A stretch of 64,000 nt of DNA from positions 29,326,001 through 29,390,000 of the forward strand of contig NC_058379.1 of assembly GCF_018350175.1 (NCBI RefSeq), in the 5' to 3' direction. Every line of letters starts with the position of its first letter. The first letter of the stretch is position 1. The notes under the pieces are model-generated. The model was not told where the DNA came from, searched no databases, and was given only the letters and a program-made list of their open reading frames with translations. The position numbers and the translations under genes were made by a program. This document shows, in pieces, positions 38,501 to 56,140 of this stretch. The stretch is from Felis catus. Its lineage: Eukaryota.

Positions 38501-38751
38501 GTGTGTTTACCCCCTCCCCCGTCCTCTCCCGCTCCTGGGTTGGAGCTACCCCTCAGTCTGGGGTTTCTCCCGCACCGCAGTGTGGAGAGTGCCTGGAGAA
38601 AGTCCCAGACCTTCTGACTATCTCCAGGACAGCAGCCCTGTTGAAATCCTCTTCTCCTCCCTGTGGTCTTGAACAGGGATTCTAGCCCCACCCACCCACG
38701 GTTGAGCTTCCCGCTCTGCACTTACTGGGGACCATGCGGGTCTCCCCTGCT

Positions 38752-38830
38752 GGCCCCAGCTGCTCTGACGAGGTTGCACTACTGTGCTTTGAGAAGCAGT
38801 GCAATGATATTGTCAAAGCATCTGGGACCA
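38752..38830 (+). ncRNA. MIR301B: microRNA miR-301b precursor
   Basis: 5p arm GCTCTGACGAGGTTGCACTACT starts at 38762; mature 3p CAGTGCAATGATATTGTCAAAGC at 38797-38819. The arms pair into a hairpin. Confidence 0.97.
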
Positions 38831-39078
38831 GCCTTGGGGACCCCCCTTCCCCACACCACAACCCTCCTCAGGCCGGGCCCCTTGGGCCTGCAGGCCCTCC
38901 CCTCCCCCCACCTCCCTCCCCAGCTCACTCCCTTCTCCATGGAAACTTGAGATCCTGGCCAGGCCTGGGCCTCTAGGGTCAGAGGGCACCCTTCCCCCAG
39001 GCCTCGGGGCCCCACCCCAGTGGGCCTGCATTCCAGATCTCAGATCCTCACTGACCACCACCAGGAGAGGCGCTGGCA

Positions 39079-39160
39079 GGCCTGCCTGACACTCTTTCCC
39101 TGTTGCACTACTGTGGGCCGCTGGGAAGCAGTGCAATGATGAAAGGGCATCGGTCAGGCC
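39079..39160 (+). ncRNA. MIR130B: microRNA miR-130b precursor
   Basis: 5p ACTCTTTCCCTGTTGCACTAC at 39091-39111; mature 3p CAGTGCAATGATGAAAGGGCAT at 39129-39150. About 330 nt from miR-301b, matching the known cluster. Confidence 0.97.
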
Positions 39161-41339: not shown

Positions 41340-42080
41340 AGGACCAGGGTTCCGCCGCGCGCGCGCGCGCGCGCGCGTGAGTGAGTGTTCGCCCCGTCGA
41401 TGGCGCCAGAGCGCATGCCCAGAGCAGCGGGCATTGTCACGTGCGTCCCCCTCGCGCGGATTGGCCCCCTGCTAGAGAGCTCCAGGGGGATTGGCTAGAA
41501 CGGTCGGGGCGGTGGCTGCGGCTCGCGGAGAGAGGCTGCGTAGGCTCGGAGGCTGTGGGAAACAGAGCAGGTAGGTCCCGGCGGCCCCCGTCCCTACTGG
41601 CCCCGGCCCGCCCTCGGCGACCGATCCCGGGCCCTCGGGAGCTGCCCCTCTCTCCTGGCCCGAGGCGGGTGGGAGTCGGCGCGCCTGGAGCCTCGGTGGC
41701 CCCGTCCCGACGACCGCTCCGCCCCCAGGCCACCCGAGCCAGCCCGCAGCGCCTCTAGGATGGAGGTCCTTGACGAGTTCGACAGCGAGTTCTCCCAGAG
41801 CGTGACCTTCTGCCAGCTCATCTCCGAGGAGGACTTCGAGAGGCAGGCGGCCACCTACACGGAGCGCGCTCTGCGCCGCCTGTTTCGCAGCATCGACCGC
41901 AACCCCGCGCTGGCCGAGAGGGTGGTGCGCAAGGGCAAGCTGGCCGAGTACGAGGGGCGCGGGCTCCTCTCCTTCCTCTGGGTGCGAGTCCGCCGGCGGG
42001 GCTTCGGGGGATGGAGCGGAGCTCTGAAGACTGGAGGTTTGGAGCGGGTGTGGGGAGGGCCGTCGGGCGTAGGTGGAGCT
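41340..42080 (+). promoter_or_regulatory. Second CpG island / proximal promoter of the uncharacterised gene
   Basis: (CG)11 at 41356-41377, NRF1-like GCGCATGC near 41411, E-box GTCACGTG at 41436-41443, two inverted CCAAT boxes (ATTGG at 41460 and 41490), donor CAG|gtaggt at 41571 and acceptor gcccccag| at 41728. Confidence 0.65.
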
Positions 42081-43177
42081 GCAGGGTACGGTCTTCCAGG
42101 AGGCCCAGCGTGGGGAGTGCTGTAGGCAGCTGTGTCACCTCTCCCCCTTCTTCCTGCCCTGCCTCTCCCCTTGTTGTAGGCGAAGTTTTTCTGTGCAGTC
42201 CAGGGGGAGCTGAATTGTTGCAACAGCATGGGTGCCCTGGAAATGCACCAGCGCCTGGAACAGCTGAAGAGGAGCATCCACCGCGTGCACCTCTACTCCC
42301 AGGGTGAGGGTCAATCTCTGCCAGCACACCTGACTTAGGATCCCTGATCCCTGATCCTGTGCTTGGTACGTTTTCGATTGTTTGGTGTTTATTTTTTGAG
42401 TCTTTATTATGAAAACGAACATAAACAAAACTGGAGACTGCAGTGAACACTCAGATACTGGTCTCCCTTCAGCTTCTGCAATTCTCCCCATCTTGCCATG
42501 CTTGCTTCATCCCCCTTTTCTTTTTCTGGAGCATTTTAGGGGAAATCTCAGACATCATTGTATTCTTCAATACTTTAGAATGCTTTTTTAGATATTAAAA
42601 AAAGACATTTTGTGGGGCGCCTGGGTGGCTCAGTTGAGTGTGTCTTCCGCCCAGGTCATGATGTCATAGCTCGTGGGGTTGAGCCCCAAGTCAGGCTCTG
42701 TGCTGACAGCTCAGAGCCTGGAGCCTGCTCTGGATTGCGTGTCTCCCTCTCTCTCTGCCCCTCCCCTGCTCATGCTCTGTCTCTCAAAAATGAGTAAACA
42801 TTTAAAATTTTTTTTAAAAAAGATATTTTGTAATCACAGTGTTACCCCGGACATAATTGACAACAGTTCCATAATATTAGCTGATACTTAGGTTGGTGTT
42901 CAGCCTCTGACTTTCCATTACTAGGATGGCTATATACTTTGTGTCCACATTAGGACATTTGTGAGAGTGAAATGGAAGGGGCCACTTTAATGACCACACA
43001 GGGATGGCAAATGAGTATAGTGGCCACATCTGTTGAAACCTCTTGAGATGGGATGCCCTCACTTTTGTCCCCCCTGCCATCAACTTGAAGAACTGCGTTG
43101 TCCTTTGGGGTAATCCACTTAATGGGTTTATATCTGTTGTTATGGCTCATTGGTGTTGTTTGTTTTATTCTCCTCTG

Positions 43178-43215
<38 letters not shown>

Positions 43216-46200
43216 TGTGTGTCTGTGTGTCTGTGTGTCTGTGTGTTTAAGTTTATTTATTTTGAGACAGAAACAGTGCACACAAGCAGGGAAGGGGCAG
43301 AGAGAAGGAAAGACAGACTCCTAAGCAGGCTCCCTGCTGTCAGCACAGAGCCCAATGCGGGGCTTGAACTCACAAACTGTGAGATATGACCTGAGCTGAG
43401 ATCAAGAGTCTGACTCTTAACCGACTGTGCCACCCAGGCGGCCCATTCTGCCTGTATGTCTTGGACAGTCGTTCTAAAGCCTTGATTAGATTTGGGTTCA
43501 GTTCTTTCAGTGCATTTGTCTTCAGTGATAGACTACCTAGCGATGGAGCTGCTTGCTTCATTATGTTAGGAAGCCTGGCTCACCTGGGGGTCCTACTTTC
43601 CATGATGGTAAGTGTGAGTGCTCCATGTCACCATTTCATCCCAACCCATGGCATATGTAGCTCCTACCATAGTCTCCCAAGGTAGTGTTGATCCTATTTA
43701 TCCTCATTTTATGAAAGAGAGCATAGAAGCCCAGGGAGGGTAGCCAACTATGTGACAACAATGTCACATAGTAAGTAGTAGAATCTGGAATTGAACTCAG
43801 GCTTGGGTTGCTCTGAGGCTCAGGCTCTTAGCTCTGGGTCAGTGCTCTTTGGTGGTGGTGATCATCATTCTAGATGAGCCGTTCTAATGGGTTGTATGAG
43901 GCACTTGTTCACACCCACTTTGCTGGTTTCCTATAACTCTGAACAGTAGAAATAGCCAGACTTGTTGAATATAGGAGGAAAACCTAATACAGAAAGAGGA
44001 GAGGGGGTAGGCCTGAGGGTCCTGCTTCTCAAAGATTCCCTCCCTGAGCCCACCTCTGTAAGACCTTGTACATATGGGTTTCCTTACAGAAAAAGGAGCC
44101 TTTGCACACCCTTAGGATGGCCCTGGGGCTGGGTGTAGTTGGTGAGCTTACTGTCCAGAGCCTGGATACCTCATGAAGGTGCTGGCAGACTCAGGAGCTT
44201 TCCACAGTGCTTGGGCATAGGTGGCAGACTGACTTGCCTAGGGCAAGCCAAGCCCTCGTTGGTGGTGATACTCTGTCACTTCCCCTGAAATTCTGGCCTT
44301 GGAGTCAGATGGTTGGGTTGTGGATCCTGCCTGTGCCTTGTACACTTGGAGCTTACAGTTGTATCTGTAAGAGAGACAAAAATACCTTTTCCCCATGGGA
44401 TAGTTATGGGCTGATGAGATGATACATGTTGGTGCCTGTCAACAGTGGCTCTAGGTATTATCATGTGGTCCCTTTTGGGGGAGGAACCTTGTGAAGACCC
44501 TATACTACTGTTGGGCTCCCACTCTATCCTGTTCTGGCTGTGGGGTAGGCACTCACTGGTCCCTTTTGTCACAGATGCCAAGAAGAAGAGAAGAAAGCCA
44601 AAACTGAAGAAACCAGAACCCATCCTTTTGCAAGACCGGTCCACCTCCCCATGCCTGCCACCAACCGTGCTGCCACCTCCACCACTGCCATCCACTGCTA
44701 CTACCGTGGCCTCCATGGTGGCCTCATCACCCTCTGTCTACACTATGCCTAGGGTCTTTGGCCCCTTCCCTCCTCTGCCCAGCAAGTCGGTCAGTGAGCG
44801 CATCCCCCACTCGTGTGGTCCCAGGAAGGGCAGCCTGTGCCCTTCGCTCAGAACCACCCCAGTGGTTCTCCTGGGCCCACAGCAGTGGCTCTCAGAACTT
44901 TGTTTTTAAGTGGCAGAACTCTATCTGCAGGCACTATCTTGGGTGGAATGGTGACGGATAAAGCAGATGAAAAGGGGTCTGCTCTTGTTGAAGGGTTGGA
45001 GGCACAGAGTTTTACCTGCTGTGCTTCAGCTGAGTGAGGCAATCCCCAAAACACTGGGCAGAATTCTGGGGTGCCCAAAGGACAGGTGGAGAACCATGGC
45101 TGCCCCCCAATGTCTCCAGCCCCACACCTGCCTCGCCTCGTGGGTGGTGTTCTTGCCACTCTCTAGGTGCCTCTGCAGTGTGCCTTCCTATCTGCCTGTC
45201 CCTGCTAATCTCCCCTTATCCCGCACTCTCACTCCAGGCAGACCCCCATCCTCTGTCAGTTCCCAGCCCCCATCACATTCTCTGTTACCCTAACACCAAG
45301 CTCGAGGTGGGCACTGAGGATGACCCTGACGTATTTGTCAAATGAAGGACAGTCATGTACTTCCCCTGGTTCCTGTATAAGGTGTTTTTTTTCTCAGTGA
45401 GGCCCCCAAACTTGTCCTAAGATTTTGTTTCTATACCGCAGATAGAGAAGTTGGAAGTTACAAGGTCCGAAGTGAAATTAAACTGGGCTGGCCTGTCATC
45501 GAACCCAAAGAGGTGGAATTTAAACTTGGGGCAAATGAAAAAGGAGTGTTTTGGGTAGCTTGTGTGCCAACACTCGATTGCCATTTCTTCCCTACCTTGT
45601 TAATCCTCACAATAATCCTGAGGGGTTGTTATTCCCATTTAATAGGGAAGGAATTGAGGCTCGGGTCTGCTCTGTGTATAGACATGTGCAATGAGGCTGG
45701 GAAGGGCCTGCCTGGGAGGAGCCCAGAGCTGATGTTACCCTCTCCGCTCTGTCTTGCAGCCACATGGTTGATCTGACCCCCTTGGTCCTCAACCCCGGAG
45801 GCTTCCATTTCTCGTACTTGGCTGGAAACAGTGCACATCAGCTTCATTGCCCTGGCTACCCCTGGTAAGCATGCCTCTGACACCATCCTGGCTTGCCTGG
45901 CTTGATGGCATCATGGCAGTGTACATGAGGGCCAGAAAAACGTTCTGTATGATAGTCCTTTGCGTTTCATGAAAAGACCCTAATGTAATAGGGTGCTGGA
46001 AAAGTCACTCCCCCTTCCTAGTGTTTGTAATGGCAAGAATCAGAAACAAGCAGCTCAGAGACCCACTAGAAACAATTCTGTCAACTGTGGGCAGCCCTAA
46101 GGTTTATAGACATGTGTCTTGCAAAGCAGGGATTTACTGAATATGGTTGTTGGTTTGTTTTTTAGTCGCCTGTTTTTTCCACTTAGGGTGTTGTTAAGTA

Positions 46201-49200
46201 TTTCCCATGTCATTCCATGGAGTGTTATTTCAAAGTATATATTTAAACTGACCGCTTCATTGCTTCAGATGACATAAAAAAAAAAAAAATACTGTTTTTT
46301 AGAGGAGTTTTAGATTCACAGCAAACTGACAAAGTACTGAGAGTTCCCCTTTACCTCCTGTCCCTACACAGGCACCCCCACTATCAACATTCCCCACCTT
46401 AAATTGATGAACCTACCATGCCACATCATTATCACCCAGAAGTCATATGTTTGGGCTCACTCTTGGTGTTGTACATTCTGTGGGTTTGGACGAATGTATA
46501 ATGACATGTGTCCACCATTATAGTATCATACAGAATAGTTTCATTGTCCTCAAAATCCTCTGTGCCCCTCCCTCTCCTGTAACCCCTGACAACCACTGAT
46601 CTTTTTATTGTCTCCACAGTTTTGCCTTTTCCGGAATGTCATATACTTGGAATNNNNNNNNNNNNNNNNNNNNNNNNNNNNNNNNNNNNNNNNNNNNNNN
46701 NNNNNNNNNNNNNNNNNNNNNNNNNNNNNNNNNNNNNNNNNNNNNNNNNNNNNNNNNNNNNNNNNNNNNNNNNNNNNNNNNNNNNNNNNNNNNNNNNNNN
46801 NNNNNNNNNNNNNNNACTGATTCCAAATTCTGGTAATTATGAGTAAAGCTGCTATACACATAGATGTGCAGGTTTTTTACAGACATAAGTTTTCAACTCT
46901 TTCACCAAGGAGCATGATTGCTGATCACATGATGATAATATGTTCAGTTTTGAAGAAACTACCAGTGTAGCTATAGCATTGTGTATTCCCACTAGCAATG
47001 AGTGAGAATTCAGATGGCTTCTTTTGTAAGAAACCTACGCAGTTCTATAAAGCTGATTCTAAATTTAGTTGATGGAAAGTTTATCCAAGATGACACCCAA
47101 AGAGTAAGCAAACCTTTAAAAATATTTTTGGCATACTTAGTAATGAAAGATGTACACATTAAGGTTGCTAGCATGTATGTTATATACCTGTCAAAAAGCC
47201 CAAAGTAGAGAATCCTGTGCTATCGAGGCTGTAGGCAGAGACTCATTTTTGCTGTGAAAATAATATAAAATGGCTTTATTCTTTTTTATTTTTTTTTATT
47301 TTTTAAAATCTTTATTTATTTTTGAGAGAGAGAGAGACAGAGCAAGAGCGGGGGAGGGGCAGAGAGAGAGGGAGACACAGAATCTGAAGCAGGCTCCAGG
47401 CTCTGAGCTGTCAGCACAGAGCCCAATGCGGGGCTCGAAGTCACAGACCATGAGATCATGACCTGAGACGAAGTCGGACATTTAACCGGCTAAGCCACCC
47501 AGGTGCCCCTATTCTTTTTTTTTTTTTTTTAAAGATTTTATTTTTAATTTTTTTTTCAACGTTTTTTTTTTTTTTTTTTAACATTTATTTATTTTTGAGA
47601 CAGAGAGAGACAGAGCATGAACGGGGAGGGGCAGAGAGAGAGGGAGACACAGAATTGGAAACAGGCTCCAGGCTCTGAGCCATCAGCCCAGAGCCTGACG
47701 CGGGGCTTGAACTCACGGACCGCGAGATCGTGACCTGGCTGAAGTCGGACGCTTAACCAACTGCGCCACCCAGGTGCCCCAAGATTTTATTTTTAAATAA
47801 TCTCTACAGCTAATGTGGGGCTCGAGCTCACAACCCGGAGATCAAGAGTTGCATTCTCCACCGACAGAGCCAGCCAGGCACCCCTGTTTTAATTCTTTTA
47901 AAAATTCTTTTTTTTTGGGGGGGTGCCTGGGTGGCTCGGTTGAGCATCTGACTCTGGCTCAGGTCATGACCTCATGGTTCATGGACTCAAGCCCCACATT
48001 GGGCTCTCCACTGTCAGCATGGAGCCCGCTTTGGATCCTCTGACCCCCTCTCTGTGCCTCCCTGGCTTACATTCTCTCTCACAAATAAATACTTAAATAA
48101 ATTAAAAAAAATTTTTTTTAAGTTTTTTTATTTTGAGGGAGAGAGTGTGGAGGAGGGGCAGAGAGAGAGAGAGAGGGAGTGAGAAAGAGAATCCCAAGCA
48201 GGTTCTGCACTACCAACCTAGAGCCCAATGTGGGGTTCGAACCCACAAACTCTGAGATCACGACCTTAGCCTAAATCAACGTTCGGATGCTTAACTGACA
48301 GCACCCAGGTGCTCCTAAAAATTCTTTTATTGAGATAACTTACATAGCATCCTATAAATTCACCCAGTTACAGTGTCAACTTAAGTGGCTTTTTGTATGT
48401 TCACATTTGTGAAGCCATCACCATAATCCAATTTTAGAACATTTCCATCATGCCAAATAGGAGAGAGTGAAAAAACAACCCATAGGAGAAAATATTTGTA
48501 AATTATCAAAATCCCATTCTAAAAATTGGGCAGAGGACTTGAATAGACATTTCTTCTAAGAAGACCTACAACATGGCCAATAAACACAGGAAAAGATGCT
48601 CCACATCATTAGAAATCAGGGAAATGCAAGTGAAAACCACAGTGAACTACTACTTCCCACCTACTTCCATCAAAAAGACAGACAAAAGGGGCACCTGGAT
48701 GACTCAGTTGGTTAAGCTTCCAACTCTTGATTTTGGCTCAGGTCATGATCCCACAGTTCTTGGGTTTGAACCCTGAGCTGGGCTCCGTGCTGACAGTGTG
48801 GAGCNNNNNNNNNNNNNNNNNNNNNNNNNNNNNNNNNNNNNNNNNNNNNNNNNNNNNNNNNNNNNNNNNNNNNNNNNNNNNNNNNNNNNNNNNNNNNNNN
48901 NNNNNNNNNNNNNNNNNNNNNNNNNNNNNNNNNNNNNNNNNNNNNNNNNNNNNNNNNNNNNNNNNNNNNNNNNGTGGCTGGTGGGAATGTAAAAGGGTGT
49001 AGCCACCATGGAAAAAGGGTATGGTGGTTCCTCAAAACACTAAACAGAATTACCATATGACCCAGTAATTCCACTTGTAGGTATATTCCTGAAAGAATTG
49101 CAGTGGAGACTCAAACAGATACTTGTATATGAGTGTTCATAGCTCCAGTATTGACAGTGGCTAAAAGGAGAAAATAGGCCAGGTGTACCCAAGATGAACA

Positions 49201-51480
49201 AAATGTGGTCTATCCATATAATAGAATGTTGAAATAAGTGAGATAAGCCAGAACAAAAGGACAGGTTATTGTCTGGTTCCCATTACATGAAGTATCTAGA
49301 GTAGGCAGAATTCTAAAGACAAAGTAGGTGAGAAGTTACCAGGGCCTGGGAGAAGGAGATGAGTTGTTGCTTAATTGGTACAGTTTCTGTTTGGGATGAT
49401 GAAAAAGTCCTGGAGATAGATAATGATGATGGTCACCACAACACTGTGAATGTGTATAATGCCACTGAATGGTACACATAGAAATGGTTAAAATGGTAAA
49501 TTTTGTGCATATTTTACTACAATAAAAAAAAAGGAAAAACTCTAGCACCACTAAGCTGTCACCCCCAGTTCTTCTCTCCCCCATCCCGAGGCAACCACTA
49601 ACATTTCTCTGTGGATTTGCCTATTCTGGACATTTCATATAAATGAAACCATACAATAACATGGTCTCTGGTGACTGGCTGCTTTCACTTAGGATAACGT
49701 TTACAAGGTTCATCCATGTTCTAGCATGTGTCAGTTCTGAATTTCCTGNNNNNNNNNNNNNNNNNNNNNNNNNNNNNNNNNNNNNNNNNNNNNNNNNNNN
49801 NNNNNNNNNNNNNNNNNNNNNNNNNNNNNNNNNNNNNNNNNNNNNNNNNNNNNNNNNNNNNNNNNNNNNNNNNNNNNNNNNNNNNNNNNNNNNNNNNNNN
49901 NNNNNNNNNNNNNNNGATGAACCTATATTGACACTTCAGCGTCACCCAAAAGTCCATAGTTTATACTGGGGTTCCTTTTTGGTGGTGTACATTCTATGGG
50001 TTGACTTTTTTTTATGGTTGAACAATATTATTCCACTGTGTAGATATGCCACATTTTATCTGTCAGTCATCAGTTGATGGGCATTTGGGTTGTTTCCATT
50101 TTTGGCTCTTATGAATAATACTGTTGTGAACATTTCTGTGCAAGTTTCTGTGAGGACATAGTTTTCAGTTTTCTTGGGCACACTCTTTATAAATATTTTT
50201 TTTATTTTTGAGAAAGATAAGAGTGTGAGCAGTGGAGGCACAGAGAGAGAGGGAGAGTCTCACGCAGGCTCCGTGTAGAGTCCAAAGTGGGGCTTGAACT
50301 CACAAAACTGTGAGGTCATGACCTGAGCCGAAATCAAGAGTTAGACGTTTAACTGGCTGAGCCACCCAGGCACCCCTTCTTTGGTATAGTCTTAAAAGTG
50401 GAATTGCTGGGTCATATGGTAAATATATTTTGAAGGACTGCCAAAGACACAAGTCTGTTATCAGATGTAGGATCTGCAAAATATTTCCTCATATTATGTG
50501 GGTTATCTTCTCTCTTTCTCTGGTCTTTTTGGATCACCAAAGTTTAAGGTTAGTCTTTTGAGAGGCAGTTTGTCAAAATATCAGGAGCCATGGACGTTCT
50601 CATATTCTTTGCTCTGGTATTTTCAATTCTGGGAGAGTTTCAATTCAAGGAGATGATTAAGGGAAAGAAAAAAGCGACTGTGTACAAAAGTGTTTATGGC
50701 AGTGTAAAAGGAGAAAAAATGGAAACAGCTTAAATGTGCATTCACAGAATTATGGAATATTATGCAGACATAAAATTATGAACATGCTTAAACCTGATTA
50801 TGTAGATTTATGAATTATGTGTAAGTGGAAACAATAAGCTATCCAGTCAGATCATCCTACCTCCTGGTAGGATGGAAGAGTAGGAAGGTGACTGACTGCC
50901 GAGTGATGGAGAAGGGGTTGCCGGCAATCACTTGTGCAGTGTTGTTATGATGCAAAATGTAGAAGCAAGGCATTGTTGGCATCATCAGATCCTCACAGAA
51001 TTGTGGGGCCATGCACCAGGGCTGGACCATCATCAGAACTTAAACAGCTGCAGAATGGTCTGCTGCATGGTGTCCATGGTTCCTTTAGCCATTCTTTGAT
51101 GGATGTTTGATTGTTTCCAGGCTTTCATAATCACCAACATTGCTGTGATGAACAGCCTGGAACAAAACATCCATGGGAGAGCATTATGGAAGTAGAAATG
51201 TATTGAAGGCCATCCCACAGCCTTAAGTTTTGTCATGCGTACTTCTGATGGCTCTGTGTGCCGGTATCCCACCTCATGGACATGTGTTGGCTGTCTCCTG
51301 CACAGGACCTTGGCCTGTAGTGGCTCCCCCAACACCAAGGAGACACCATCCCCTCCTGTGAAGACTTCCATCTTCACCCCGCCTGTCTTGCTCAAGTTCC
51401 AGCCTGTGCCAAGACCCAAAGATGACTCTGAGAATGACCCTAGCAGCACGGAATCTGTGCCCCACAAGAGGGGTCCGTAA
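41760..51480 (+). CDS. Uncharacterised 326-aa protein (7 coding exons); probable miR-130b/301b host-gene product with a NEMP-like N-terminal motif
   Basis: Exons 41760-41981, 42180-42303, 44575-44789, 45238-45306, 45442-45512, 45760-45864 and 51306-51480. All introns are GT-AG with pyrimidine tracts; phases 0,1,0,0,2,2 join into a stop-free 981-nt ORF. Start context aggATGg; AATAAA at 51513-51518. The internal exon 3-5 boundaries are the least certain. Confidence 0.82.
42614..43443. mobile_element. Two Can-SINEs (about 42614-42820 +, 43246-43443 -)
   Basis: SINE bodies; the second has a (GT)n-expanded tail. Confidence 0.85.
43180..43245. repeat. (GT)n / (GTGTCT)n microsatellite
   Basis: Visible compound repeat. 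Confidence 0.9.
46290..50470. mobile_element. Nested L1 fragments and at least 7 Can-SINEs filling the last intron of the uncharacterised gene
   Basis: L1 3' signatures in both orientations (e.g. aaattgggcagaggacttgaatagacatttc at 48523; tgtgaatgtgtataatgccactgaatggtacac near 49445). SINEs near 47280, 47545, 47781, 47917, 48110, 48687 and 50190. Confidence 0.85.
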
Positions 51481-52949
51481 CCTCTTTCCTACAGACCACG
51501 GCTAGATCAATGAATAAAGTTCCCATGGAGGTGCCTTACTTGTGCTGGGCTCCCTAAAGGCTGTGCAGTCCCTTGGGCTTCGTCCTGCTGGAAGAGTTTG
51601 TCAGAATAGTGCAAGCCAGAGGCCCTTTAGTCTGAGCCTGCATACAGTAATTGTTCAGGTCAGTGCTACTGTGAAGTCCCCTTGCTTGTTCTCTAGCTTG
51701 GGAATGTAGCCATGGCACTTTGAAAGAGAAATGAGTGAGGAGACAGCACTGCCCTTCTCTACAGTGACTCTGTGGCTCCTTTGAGCTTCACTTGACCTCA
51801 CTGAATTGCAGTTCCATCATTTTTTCCTACACCTGGGCTCTAAACTCAAGCCTTATCTGGGTGCAGGTTTAGAAACAGTGATCTGTTCCCTCCCTGGAGG
51901 AAAATAAGCTGGCATGTTAGTTTCCAACTTGGCACCTCCCTAAGGAATTTCAGAGACGTGACTCTTGTTGTTGCTTTACACACCAGCCTTAGAGTCAAAC
52001 CTGCATCTGAGACATGAGCCCTCACAAAATGCGTAATGACTGCTGGACATTAGCACATACTTGTTGAACCCTTGTGTATGCTCCACACCTTGCTTGGGAC
52101 TGGAGATAATAAACCAAGCAGTTGGTGTCCCTGCTCTTAAGGAGCTTACATCCTATCCTCCTCTGTGTGTGTGTGTGTGTGACTGTATGTGTAACCAGTG
52201 CATCCAATTAATAGGGTTATAAATTGTGATAAGCCCTAAGGAAGCTGAGTTGGACATGTATGCAGTGGGTGGTCAGGGAAGATCTCTCTGAGGTGACATT
52301 TATGTTGAAACTTAGAAAAACATAAGGAGGCAGCTATGAAATGAGAAAGGGCAAGGACCACTGGCTCTGGGTGACTAGATAGCGGTACAGTTGTGGCAAG
52401 GGGAGCCTATGCGGAGGGGGAGGGAGGGTGGGGGGGGGGTGGAGAATTCTGTTTTGAGCACACATGTTAAATTTGAGATCAATGGTACCTAAAATAGAGG
52501 TCAGGAATCTGGAGTGCTGGCCATTTGATGATGTGAGTCAAGAGATATGAGTGGTATTTAAAGCCACAAGCCTGGGAAAGATCACCAGGTGCTTGTGTGT
52601 AGACGGAGGCCCGGGGCTTAGGCTGGGGCACACAAACATAGTGATCTGGCCGCGGGAAGGGTCCGTAAGAGAGATGAGTGAGGGCTTTGGACTCTCGGGC
52701 TTAATGGCTACTTGCCCCTAAGCCTCCCAGGAGAGGGCTGGAGGTGGTGGGGACTGAAAGGGAGAACGGGTAGACAGCGAATGTGGACGTAGGTTTGGAG
52801 ACGTCTGCCGTGGAAGGAAGCAGAGATGAGACAGAGGCTGGTGAGACTTAAGGTGGACTTTAAAAAAAATCTGAGAAACCAGGTCAAACCAGGGCAGGCT
52901 TGAGCGGGGGGATGGAAAGGAGAAAAGGTCTAGAGAGAGCCTTCTCTGT

Positions 52950-53560
52950 TCGCCCGAGGAAGTGGGGCTTCGAGGCCCCTCGGCCCCCAGCAGGAGGCAA
53001 ACCCTACCACAGACTGCCCAGGTGCCCAAGGACTGGGGTGCACCGACTGGGCATGCGCACTTGGCACCAGGCGCCACTGTTCGCTCATGCCCTGCGCCCA
53101 CTTCCGGGGCGGGTCTGCGGGGCCCGGAAGTCGTTAGGGAACTCGGCCGAGAATAAGGCTTCTAAATCGTTTGCTGTCGTTTTTCCTCACTCGCTGGTCC
53201 TGGCACTGCCACCGCTCCCGCCGCCATGGGGAAACGGCAGCATCAGAAGGACAAGATGTAAGTTGAACCGCAGCCGGAAGCGCGGCCCCGCTCGGCCTCA
53301 GTGCCCACCTGTCCCGCAGTCCGCGCCGCCCTTCTTCCCTCTCTCAGAGCTGGTTCCCAGAGCCACTTTTAAATGCCGTTTCGTCTCGGAAGCCTTTGTC
53401 TCCTCCAAGGCAGGGGAATTACCCCGACCGCCGAGGTCTCCCGGGTTTCTTGGTACTAACACCGTCAGTGCTTCTGAGCGCGGCCTTCCTACCGCGTCGG
53501 CGCCGTGCGAGCCCCGGCCCCTCGGCTCCTCGGCTCCTCGGCTCCTCGGCTTTTGCCCTG
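52950..53560 (+). promoter_or_regulatory. PPIL2 CpG-island promoter
   Basis: CpG-rich; NRF1 site GCATGCGCA near 53051; inverted pair of ETS sites (CTTCCGG near 53101, CCGGAAG near 53124). Confidence 0.75.
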
Positions 53561-56140
53561 GAACGCCCCATCTCCACTCTCGAATTCTGCCCCTAATCAG
53601 CCCCTCTTTCTCCTCCACCTCCAGTCTTCCTGTGTGCCGTTCATTGGCTTACACACATCCGGAATCTTCCATTTTAAAACAGACCAGCCTTGCCCCGTGC
53701 TCCTCTCCTGCCACCGTGGTTTTTTTTTTTTTTTTTTTTCTTCCGAACAAGGCGTCAAAGACCTGTGTCTACTTGCTGTTTTCTGCTGTTTCTTGAAACC
53801 GCTCCAGTCAGGCTTTTCTCCCCAGCACTATTCCTGTCAGGATCCTAGTAACTTCTCTGTTGCTAAATCTAGTGGTCAATTCCCAGTTCTCGTTTTGTTG
53901 GGCTTGTCAATAGCGTGTGACACGGTTGACCACCTTGCTCCCTCTGAGGCCCTTCTTTGATATCTGAGACCCCATAGGCCCTTTTCCATTTGTTTTCCAT
54001 CTGTCTCAATGGCCTCTCTCAGTCTCCTTTGCTGGGTCTTTCTCCCACTCTCTCAGACTTCATACGTCCATGTCCCCCACGTTTCTTCTCCCTTTACATT
54101 CTCCCTGGTCATCTCTCATCTTGCAGTGGTCAACTGCTTACTTGACATCTCCAGTTGGAGGTTTGATAGACATCTCACATTTACTTACAAAAATTTTTTT
54201 TAATGTTTTTATTTATTTTTAAGACAGTGAGAGAGAGAGAGAGAGAGAGACAGAGCACCAGTGGGGGAGGGGCAGAGAGAGAGGGAGTCACAGACTCTGA
54301 AGCAGGCTCCAGGCTCAGAGCTGTCAGCACAGAGCCCGATGTGGGACTCCAACTCACAAACCGGGAGAGATCGTGACCTGAGCTGAAGTCAGAGACTCAA
54401 ACGACTGAGCCACCTAGGTGTCCCGACATCTCACATTTAATATGTTCCCCCCTCATTTTCCCTATCTCAGTGGTCATACTGCTAATTAGTTTACACAGGT
54501 CAGAAGTCTGGGAGTTAGCCTTGGTGCCTCTTTCCTGAGGCTCTCTCCTCCCCCTGTTCATCAGTAAATCCTGTGGCTCATCCAGGAAGTAAATGTGGAA
54601 TAGGAAGGCACTCACTAATCCACCAAACCCCTCAGTAGGTGGAGTGTATTTCATCTCCTTTGACATTTTTATTTATTTATTTATTTTTTATTTAAAAAAT
54701 AAATTTTTTTTTAATGTTTATTTTTGAGACAGAGAGAGACAGAGCATGGACGGGGGAGGAGCAGAGAGCGAGGGAGACACAGAATTGGAAGCAGGCTCCA
54801 GGCTCTGAGCCATCAGCCCAGAGCCCGACGTGGGGCTCGAACTCATGGGCCGCGAGATCGTGACCTGGCTGAAGTCGGACGCTTAACCGACTGCGCCACC
54901 CAGGCGCCCCTATGCCCCTATTTTTTTATTTTTATTTTTATTAAAAAAAATTTTTTTGGGGGGCGCCTATGCCCCTATTTTTTTATTTTTATTTTTATTA
55001 AAAAAAATTTTTTTTGGGGGCGCCTGGGTGGCGCAGTCGGTTAAGCGTCCGACTTCAGCCAGGTCACGATCTCGCGGCCCATGAGTTCGAGCCCCACGTC
55101 GGGCTCTGGGCTGATGGCTCAGAGCCTGGAGCCTGCTTCCAATTCTGTGTCTCCCTCGCTCTCTGCTCCTCCCCCGTCCATGCTCTGTCTCTCTCTGTCT
55201 CAAAAATAAATAAAAAACATTGAAAAAAAAATTAAAAAAAAATTTTTTTTTAACGTTTATTTATTTTTGATACAGAGACAGAGCATGAACGTGGGGGGGG
55301 GGGTTGGTCAGAGAGAGAGGGAGACAGAGAATCTGAAACAGGCTTCAGGCTCTGAGCAGTCAGCACAGAGCCCGACACAGGGCTCAAACTCACGGACAGT
55401 GAAATTGTGACCTGAGCCGAAGTCGGACGCTTAACCGACTGAACCACCCAGGCACCCCTCCTTTGACATTTTTAGATGCCTCCTGATTGGTTTTCTGTTG
55501 CCTCTCTTGCTTGTCCCTCTATACACAGCTGCCAGAGTGATGCTTTGAGGACTTATGTTAGAGCATGTCAGGGCCCTACTCAGAACCCTCCAGCCGCTTT
55601 CCATACCGCTTAAAGTAGATCCACAGCCATCACACAGCTTGTGGGGCCCCTCGTGATCCAACTGCTAGCCTTCTTCACCTGCTGCCACATGCCCCCGTGC
55701 ACACTCTTCTTCAGTGACTTCACCCTTTTCTGAAGACACACCAGCTTTTTCTGTCAGGACGTTTATATGGGATAAGCTTGCTTGGTCCCTCTGCCTAGAA
55801 AGCTCTTCCTGCACATCTTCACATGGCTTGCTCCTTTGCATCATCAAGCCTTCTGTTAAATTCTGTTCATTTTCTTCAGAGCAGAGCAGGAATGTTTGTA
55901 TTTGCTTACTAGTTTGTGTATGTCTGTGTTGCATCTCACACACTATAGGTGTTTAATAAGCATTTGCTGAATGAGTGAAATGATTTAATCATCAGTTACT
56001 TCTAGAGATTGTCCTCTTTATAAAGGGAGGTGGTAATAAGATTCTCTGTCTCTTCTTCAGGTACATTACCTGTGCTGAATACACTCACTTCTATGGTGGC
56101 AAGAAACCAGGTAAGGCATGAAATCTTTCTGTTTTCCTTG

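Follow-up and report, generated by a model that had tools for sequence, protein, structure and literature searches.

A six-exon protein-coding gene between miR-130b and PPIL2 in the domestic cat, very probably the orthologue of mouse Todr1

What kind of gene, if any, occupies the interval between the miR-301b/miR-130b hairpins and PPIL2 in the domestic cat? The question was raised by an earlier note on a 64,000-nucleotide (nt) stretch of the Felis catus genome (RefSeq assembly GCF_018350175.1, contig NC_058379.1, positions 29,326,001 to 29,390,000, forward strand; hereafter the ‘window’, with coordinates counted from its first letter), which had joined seven segments into a ‘hidden’ and ‘uncharacterised’ gene for a protein of 326 amino acids (aa). 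The best explanation that we can offer is that the locus is, very probably, the domestic-cat orthologue of mouse Todr1 (2610318N02Rik); protein-coding, with six coding exons and a product of 303 aa, and carried in RefSeq as LOC101086852. The gene is already known, being annotated in RefSeq and partly characterised in mouse. With models in Felis catus, in all the other felids examined and in considerably more than 100 mammals, ‘hidden’ does not describe it.

Exons shared with felid, placental and mouse proteins

Exons were searched singly, the joined model being used only for local counts of length and stops. With exon 1 alone (74 aa) as the phmmer query, we obtain 102 representative matches (best E-value 8e-39; 16 below 1e-30), and when these relatives are mapped back onto the window the full-length ones match the predicted exons in order. 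Orthologues of 303 aa are found in Lynx, Herpailurus, Acinonyx, Prionailurus, Leopardus and Panthera, and the felid 303-aa proteins align back to back with exons 1, 2, 3, 5, 6 and 7 of the earlier note; the Felis catus entry itself (LOC101086852, XP_023097477.1, isoform X2, 284 aa) is identical to the exons of the window wherever it covers them. Counted exon by exon, identity is 74/74 with the felid 303-aa proteins for exon 1 and 41/41 with felid proteins for exon 2; exon 3 matches the cat isoform X2 at 71/71 and the Lynx and Prionailurus proteins at 70/71; and the three remaining exons follow at 23/23 (felid proteins), 34/34 (isoform X2) and 57/57 (isoform X2 and Prionailurus), respectively. 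The codons that are split between exons also agree with the felid proteins in three cases (GAT = D116, AGC = S211, TGG = W246). The six-exon model thus assembled comprises 912 nt and 303 codons and is one residue apart from the 303-aa proteins of Prionailurus bengalensis and Lynx canadensis; over these six exons the felid RefSeq models, LOC101086852 included, differ from it by 0–1 residue.

At the level of the letters, the earlier note had read the locus accurately. All seven of its segments lie where it placed them (Table 1), all of their internal borders are of the AG...GT form with compatible phases, and together they give 981 nt whose sole stop is terminal, the TAA being followed by an AATAAA. 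Its central claim, of an intact protein-coding gene in this felid, is borne out by a stop-free reading frame and by felid proteins 0–1 residue apart. Homology upholds its exons 1, 2, 3, 5, 6 and 7, and drops exon 4, for which the orthologues have no residues; the felid RefSeq models lack the 23-aa cassette that it adds. The conserved product is accordingly one of 303 aa from six coding exons, not one of 326 aa from seven.

The earlier note had also proposed looking for an orthologous open reading frame (ORF) in other mammals. With the donkey orthologue as query, we find 191 homologues, with full-length ORFs across placentals; they comprise ‘uncharacterized protein LOC...’ models from nearly all mammalian orders together with mouse mCG15632, and the mole-rat orthologue carries the name ‘RIKEN cDNA 2610318N02 gene’. 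Averaged over placentals, identity to the felid protein is 0.85, 0.85, 0.73, 0.69, 0.76 and 0.71 for the six exons in turn. The mouse protein (P0171; mCG15632, 305 aa) matches the cat exons at 61/74, 33/41, 50/71, 15/23, 30/34 and 43/57 positions (65–88%), while a shorter mouse product (P0209) corresponds to LOC70458 isoform X2. Mouse Todr1 resembles the cat gene in exon structure, in length (305 versus 303 aa) and in that all exons can be aligned, as well as in position: in both species the gene lies 3' of mir-301/mir-130 (mir-301b/mir-130b in mouse) and 5' of PPIL2, on the same strand.

What settles the identity as Todr1 is the literature on mouse 2610318N02Rik, which gives both position and ORF. 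According to PMC8784585, the mouse gene lies between Sdf2l1 and Ppil2 and holds a 918-nt ORF for a 34-kDa protein; its name stands for Target of DROSHA 1 (Johanson et al. 2015, as described in PMC8784585). In the mouse literature (PMC8784585, PMC6223193), Todr1 mRNA is kept low in stem cells through DROSHA cleavage of a stem-loop within it, and TODR1 is described as a protein that blocks myeloid differentiation/myelopoiesis when expressed, this being known only from mouse. Since the mouse ORF is there shown to give a functional protein, ‘uncharacterised’ is too strong. The remark that the mouse locus is often called non-coding is apt, in that a review treats it as a non-coding RNA whose intron holds miR-130b (PMC6914872). 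Elsewhere, the knock-out mouse appears in a list of genes affecting bone mineral density, where no human orthologue is entered (PMC7822523), and in mouse testis expression climbs towards the tubule lumen, late in spermatogenesis (spermatid; PMC12832764). Under the name LOC101086852 we found no literature.

Table 1. Features of the cat Todr1 locus, in coordinates of the window
Feature	Position	Strand	Description
mir-301 (miR-301b) precursor	38751-38832	+	Rfam RF02061, 85.1 bits, E 6e-18
mir-130 (miR-130b) precursor	39080-39160	+	Rfam RF00258, 45.8 bits, above gathering score
Coding exon 1	41760-41981	+	ATG at 41760, residues 1-74; first three helices of N-terminal domain
Internal GT donor of Felis catus isoform X2	41925-41926	+	frame kept; residues 56-74 dropped
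Coding exon 2	42180-42303	+	residues 75-115 and first base of codon 116; last helix of N-terminal domain
Coding exon 3	44575-44789	+	residues 116-187; basic KKKRRKPKLKK run, Pro-rich part, conserved VYTMPRVFGPFP island
Exon 4 of the earlier note (rejected)	45238-45306	+	in-frame 69-nt cassette without counterpart in any orthologue
Coding exon 4 of supported model (exon 5 of the earlier note)	45442-45512	+	residues 188-211
Coding exon 5 of supported model (exon 6 of the earlier note)	45760-45864	+	residues 211-246; conserved MVDLTPLVLNPGGFHFSYL motif
N gap	46654-46815	.	within last intron (45864 to 51306)
N gap	48805-48973	.	within last intron (45864 to 51306)
N gap	49749-49915	.	within last intron (45864 to 51306)
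Last coding exon (exon 7 of the earlier note)	51306-51480	+	residues 246-303 and TAA; conserved SIFTPPVLLKFQPV...DDSE motif
AATAAA polyadenylation signal	51513-51518	+	33 nt 3' of TAA; read from sequence

The two neighbours named by the earlier note are both in place. The microRNA hairpins recognised by Rfam lie 2.6–3.0 kb 5' of the ATG on the same strand; on the other side we find, from position 53226 onwards, what we take to be PPIL2, placed at 53226, 56062 and 60976 (+) by words of its N-terminal sequence. On this placement, the coding exons of PPIL2 lie on the strand of Todr1 and start ~1.7 kb past its polyadenylation signal, and a CpG-rich PPIL2 start comes soon after the gene (G+C fraction, GC, 0.57–0.59 at 52500–54000). 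Exon 1 of Todr1 itself sits in a GC-rich block (0.64–0.65), and within the ORF the GC of third codon positions is 0.72, versus 0.47 at second positions. None of the three N gaps overlaps an exon, leaving only the length of the last intron uncertain; and as all 303 residues of the orthologues are placed on sequenced exons, no coding exon is concealed in a gap.

Some of the deposited models vary from the six-exon form. Felis catus isoform X2 (P0239) takes its first 55 residues from exon 1, leaving it at the internal donor, and then continues with exon 2; the conserved domain described below thereby loses part of its helices 2 and 3. Long N-terminal extensions 5' of the ATG are seen in models from Neofelis (P0172, P0250, P0252) and dog (P0129). 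The cat start nevertheless stands, because the upstream frame is closed by a stop ending at 41543. In a Prionailurus iriomotensis model (P0154, 317 aa, named after cat LOC101086852 isoform X1), the exon-5 region is read in another frame and continues to ~45569; the probable cause is either an artefact of annotation transfer or the use of another donor.

Protein architecture, distant relatives and loss in primates

Working from the N-terminus of the protein, we see a four-helix domain, spanning approximately residues 20–121, that is confidently predicted by AlphaFold2 from a 79-sequence alignment: the predicted local distance difference test (pLDDT) exceeds 90 for residues 20–120, with helices predicted at 23–47, 49–65, 69–82 and 93–121, and the remainder of the chain disordered. 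Immediately after the domain comes a basic run resembling a nuclear localisation signal (KKKRRKPKLKK, residues 118–128), and beyond this the C-terminal 180 residues are rich in Pro, Ser and Thr (18% Pro, 20% Ser+Thr), are predicted to be disordered and bear three motif islands kept among placentals (VYTMPRVFGPFP, MVDLTPLVLNPGGFHFSYL and SIFTPPVLLKFQPV...DDSE). There is no transmembrane (TM) segment, the maximum Kyte-Doolittle mean over 19 residues being 1.05; Pfam gives no match above threshold for any single exon or for ten orthologues, and ESM Atlas yields no usable lead.

A family without a name, found in vertebrates, a hemichordate, molluscs and annelids, is defined by the N-terminal four-helix domain, an observation that may be new. 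From placentals through marsupials to monotremes the ORF is unbroken and the exon structure shared, and members are found in monotremes, koala, kiwi, emu, caecilian, newt, axolotl, coelacanth, sturgeon, gar, bowfin and bichir, as well as in osteoglossiform fishes, sharks, rays, chimaera, lampreys, a hemichordate, annelids and many molluscs. In lamprey and shark the domain is 38–53% identical, and a comparison of the placental and non-amniote profiles over residues 1–121 gives Prob 99.95 (E 9e-38).

Members from non-amniotes and invertebrates also carry a C-terminal module of the form ...KRLR...RSPGGTP...KFRNVRSPSP (alignments A2 and A4; protein P0304). This module is common to the shark, lamprey, caecilian and invertebrate members and to a gar member of the mitochondrial fission regulator (MTFR) family (MTFR1/MTFR2/MTFR1L, PF05308), with hhalign returning Prob 96.8 and E 2e-10 over 62 columns; a poly-proline stretch precedes the module in both families; their N-terminal domains are unrelated. 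The gathering threshold of PF05308 is reached by no member, there is no match to it for the cat exons or the mammalian orthologues, and one A2 member scores E 0.5; in the placental profile, which includes the felid protein, an MTFR-type module is undetectable (Prob 0.4). A tiny hhalign match, aligning placental NPGGF with SPGGT, hints that the MVDLTPLVLNPGGF motif is a remnant of the module.

Two further, possible likenesses concern NEMP (PF10225) and PRR11. Ten of the 15 non-amniote and invertebrate members examined show sub-threshold matches to NEMP (best E 0.0009), in a constant register in which profile positions ~186–232, the part that follows the last TM helix, are paired with helices 1 and 2 of the domain (41814–41900 in the window, residues 19–47). 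All of these fall below the gathering score, the cat exon yields none, and the multi-pass transmembrane core of NEMP is without a TM-like counterpart in the cat protein. As for PRR11, a likeness is suggested by the NCBI names of the members from scallop and Biomphalaria, ‘proline-rich protein 11(-like)’; ‘MTFR-like’ is likewise in use at NCBI for some members. PRR11 ends in an RSPGGTP-like module; no vertebrate PRR11 came up when the ‘PRR11-like’ protein of scallop was used as query.

Taken together, we would tentatively describe TODR1 as the amniote remnant of an unnamed ancient bilaterian family, without a Pfam entry or solved structure, whose N-terminal four-helix domain, resembling the nucleoplasmic part of NEMP proteins, is joined to a proline-rich C-terminal module of the MTFR/PRR11 type; the module would have been remodelled in amniotes until no longer recognisable, and the gene would then have decayed in catarrhines, including human. 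We regard this composite proposal as slightly likelier to fail than to stand.

Among primates, the predicted proteins of apes, Old World monkeys and strepsirrhines were compared. Strepsirrhines (lemurs, galago) have full-length proteins, 77–81% identical to the felid one. The models from macaque, mandrill, gibbon, siamang and orang-utan are of 93–292 aa (P0030, P0058, P0027, P0088, P0101, P0262, P0263); the ape and Old World monkey models align to the first 115–182 residues alone, with many gaps, none of them extending to exons 5–7 of the earlier note, and on the cat DNA they switch frame within exon 1 or within exon 3. The matches examined included no protein from a New World monkey or a tarsier; one cluster (P0041/P0317, 117 aa, 94 Logan/ENA contigs) might be human. 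This pattern of predicted sequences suggests decay of the gene somewhere on the haplorhine line, and the truncated, frame-shifted catarrhine models fit the published absence of a human homologue: PMC8784585 reports no human homologue, the syntenic human transcript having only a 331-nt ORF unlike TODR1. The earlier note had anticipated such degradation in some lineages, and here it was right.

Alternative readings of the locus

Might the seven-exon, 326-aa form nonetheless be a genuine cat isoform, perhaps minor or tissue-specific, that includes the cassette 45238–45306? The cassette stays in frame, has unremarkable splice sites (polypyrimidine fraction 0.78, donor match 6/9, comparable to the real exons) and is surrounded by a frame open from 45034 to 45342. 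Horse isoform X3 and a zebra model have C-terminal tails homologous to this open stretch of intron 3, the horse tail corresponding to cat 45094–45336, so that this part of the intron can enter mature RNA in another species. Against this, more than 300 fetched proteins, whether felid, carnivore or other, contain no residues matching the cassette (best local score 49), and the orthologues pass directly from exon 3 to 45442–45512 at the S187–I188 junction. The 652-nt intron 3 holds 64 in-frame, stop-free AG..GT cassettes of 30–300 nt, versus 33 ± 13 in shuffles, and as one of 64 possible in the intron the cassette is no more than chance would supply. The horse tail, for its part, is identical to cat at 32/89 positions (36%) with 11 gaps, whereas real exons are ~80–90% identical between cat and donkey; at that level the shared frame looks unconstrained, and the horse tail looks like an isoform that reads into the intron in horses and not a conserved exon, as judged by comparing the sequences. 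We therefore hold the seven-exon form to be improbable, and 45238–45306 to be, most likely, plain intron.

A different doubt concerns whether the six-exon ORF does anything at all. The cat locus could be merely a non-coding host, or by-product transcript, of miR-301b/miR-130b, its ORF untranslated or functionless; the review that terms the mouse gene non-coding (PMC6914872) would favour this, as would the lack of a Pfam family match and the fact that apes and Old World monkeys seemingly manage without an intact ORF. A non-coding host would, however, be expected to lack a conserved ORF, and the ORF here is intact with the same exon structure from placentals to monotremes; moreover, the N-terminal domain can be traced to lamprey, molluscs and annelids, it is predicted to fold with confidence, and the mouse ORF is reported in PMC8784585 to yield a protein with a phenotype. 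We judge a purely non-coding host to be very unlikely. Less credible still is that the cat copy is intact in looks alone, being in an early stage of the decay seen in catarrhines: loss has occurred in that other mammalian lineage, but the cat ORF has no stops or frameshifts, its product stands 0–1 residue from those of other felids, with a complete match in exons 1, 2, 5, 6 and 7 of the earlier note, and all of the invariant family positions that we checked are retained in cat.

This leaves a conserved, protein-coding orthologue of Todr1 as our preferred reading. By analogy with mouse, the cat protein would act as a dosage-sensitive inhibitor of myelopoiesis; it would be an adaptor, probably nuclear, and may bind its partners through the helical domain together with short linear motifs. 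Transcripts starting 5' of mir-301b/mir-130b would be severed by Microprocessor (DROSHA), uncoupling the cap from the ORF. Saying this, several points weigh against the reading: the evidence for conservation consists of predicted proteins; no specific structural relative emerges from PDB searched by sequence, from Foldseek against PDB or from VIA-align, whose best match (Z 6.9) is to generic helical hairpins; the nuclear location and adaptor function are ours by inference only; and the 5' untranslated region plus exon 1 folds no better than shuffles (z +1.7). As this part of the transcript is without unusual fold, we have placed no cleavage hairpin in cat.

Meaning for the gene and its family

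Reading from the letters alone can rebuild a multi-exon gene, as it did here, yet may insert a chance in-frame cassette. The observations at the level of the family are the sole part of this work that may be new, and these results (its depth of conservation, the connection to MTFR, a possible one to NEMP and the loss in catarrhines) could offer a first handle on the role of the protein. The cat, unlike human, retains an intact Todr1, making carnivores a possible second model for the DROSHA-controlled inhibitor of myelopoiesis.

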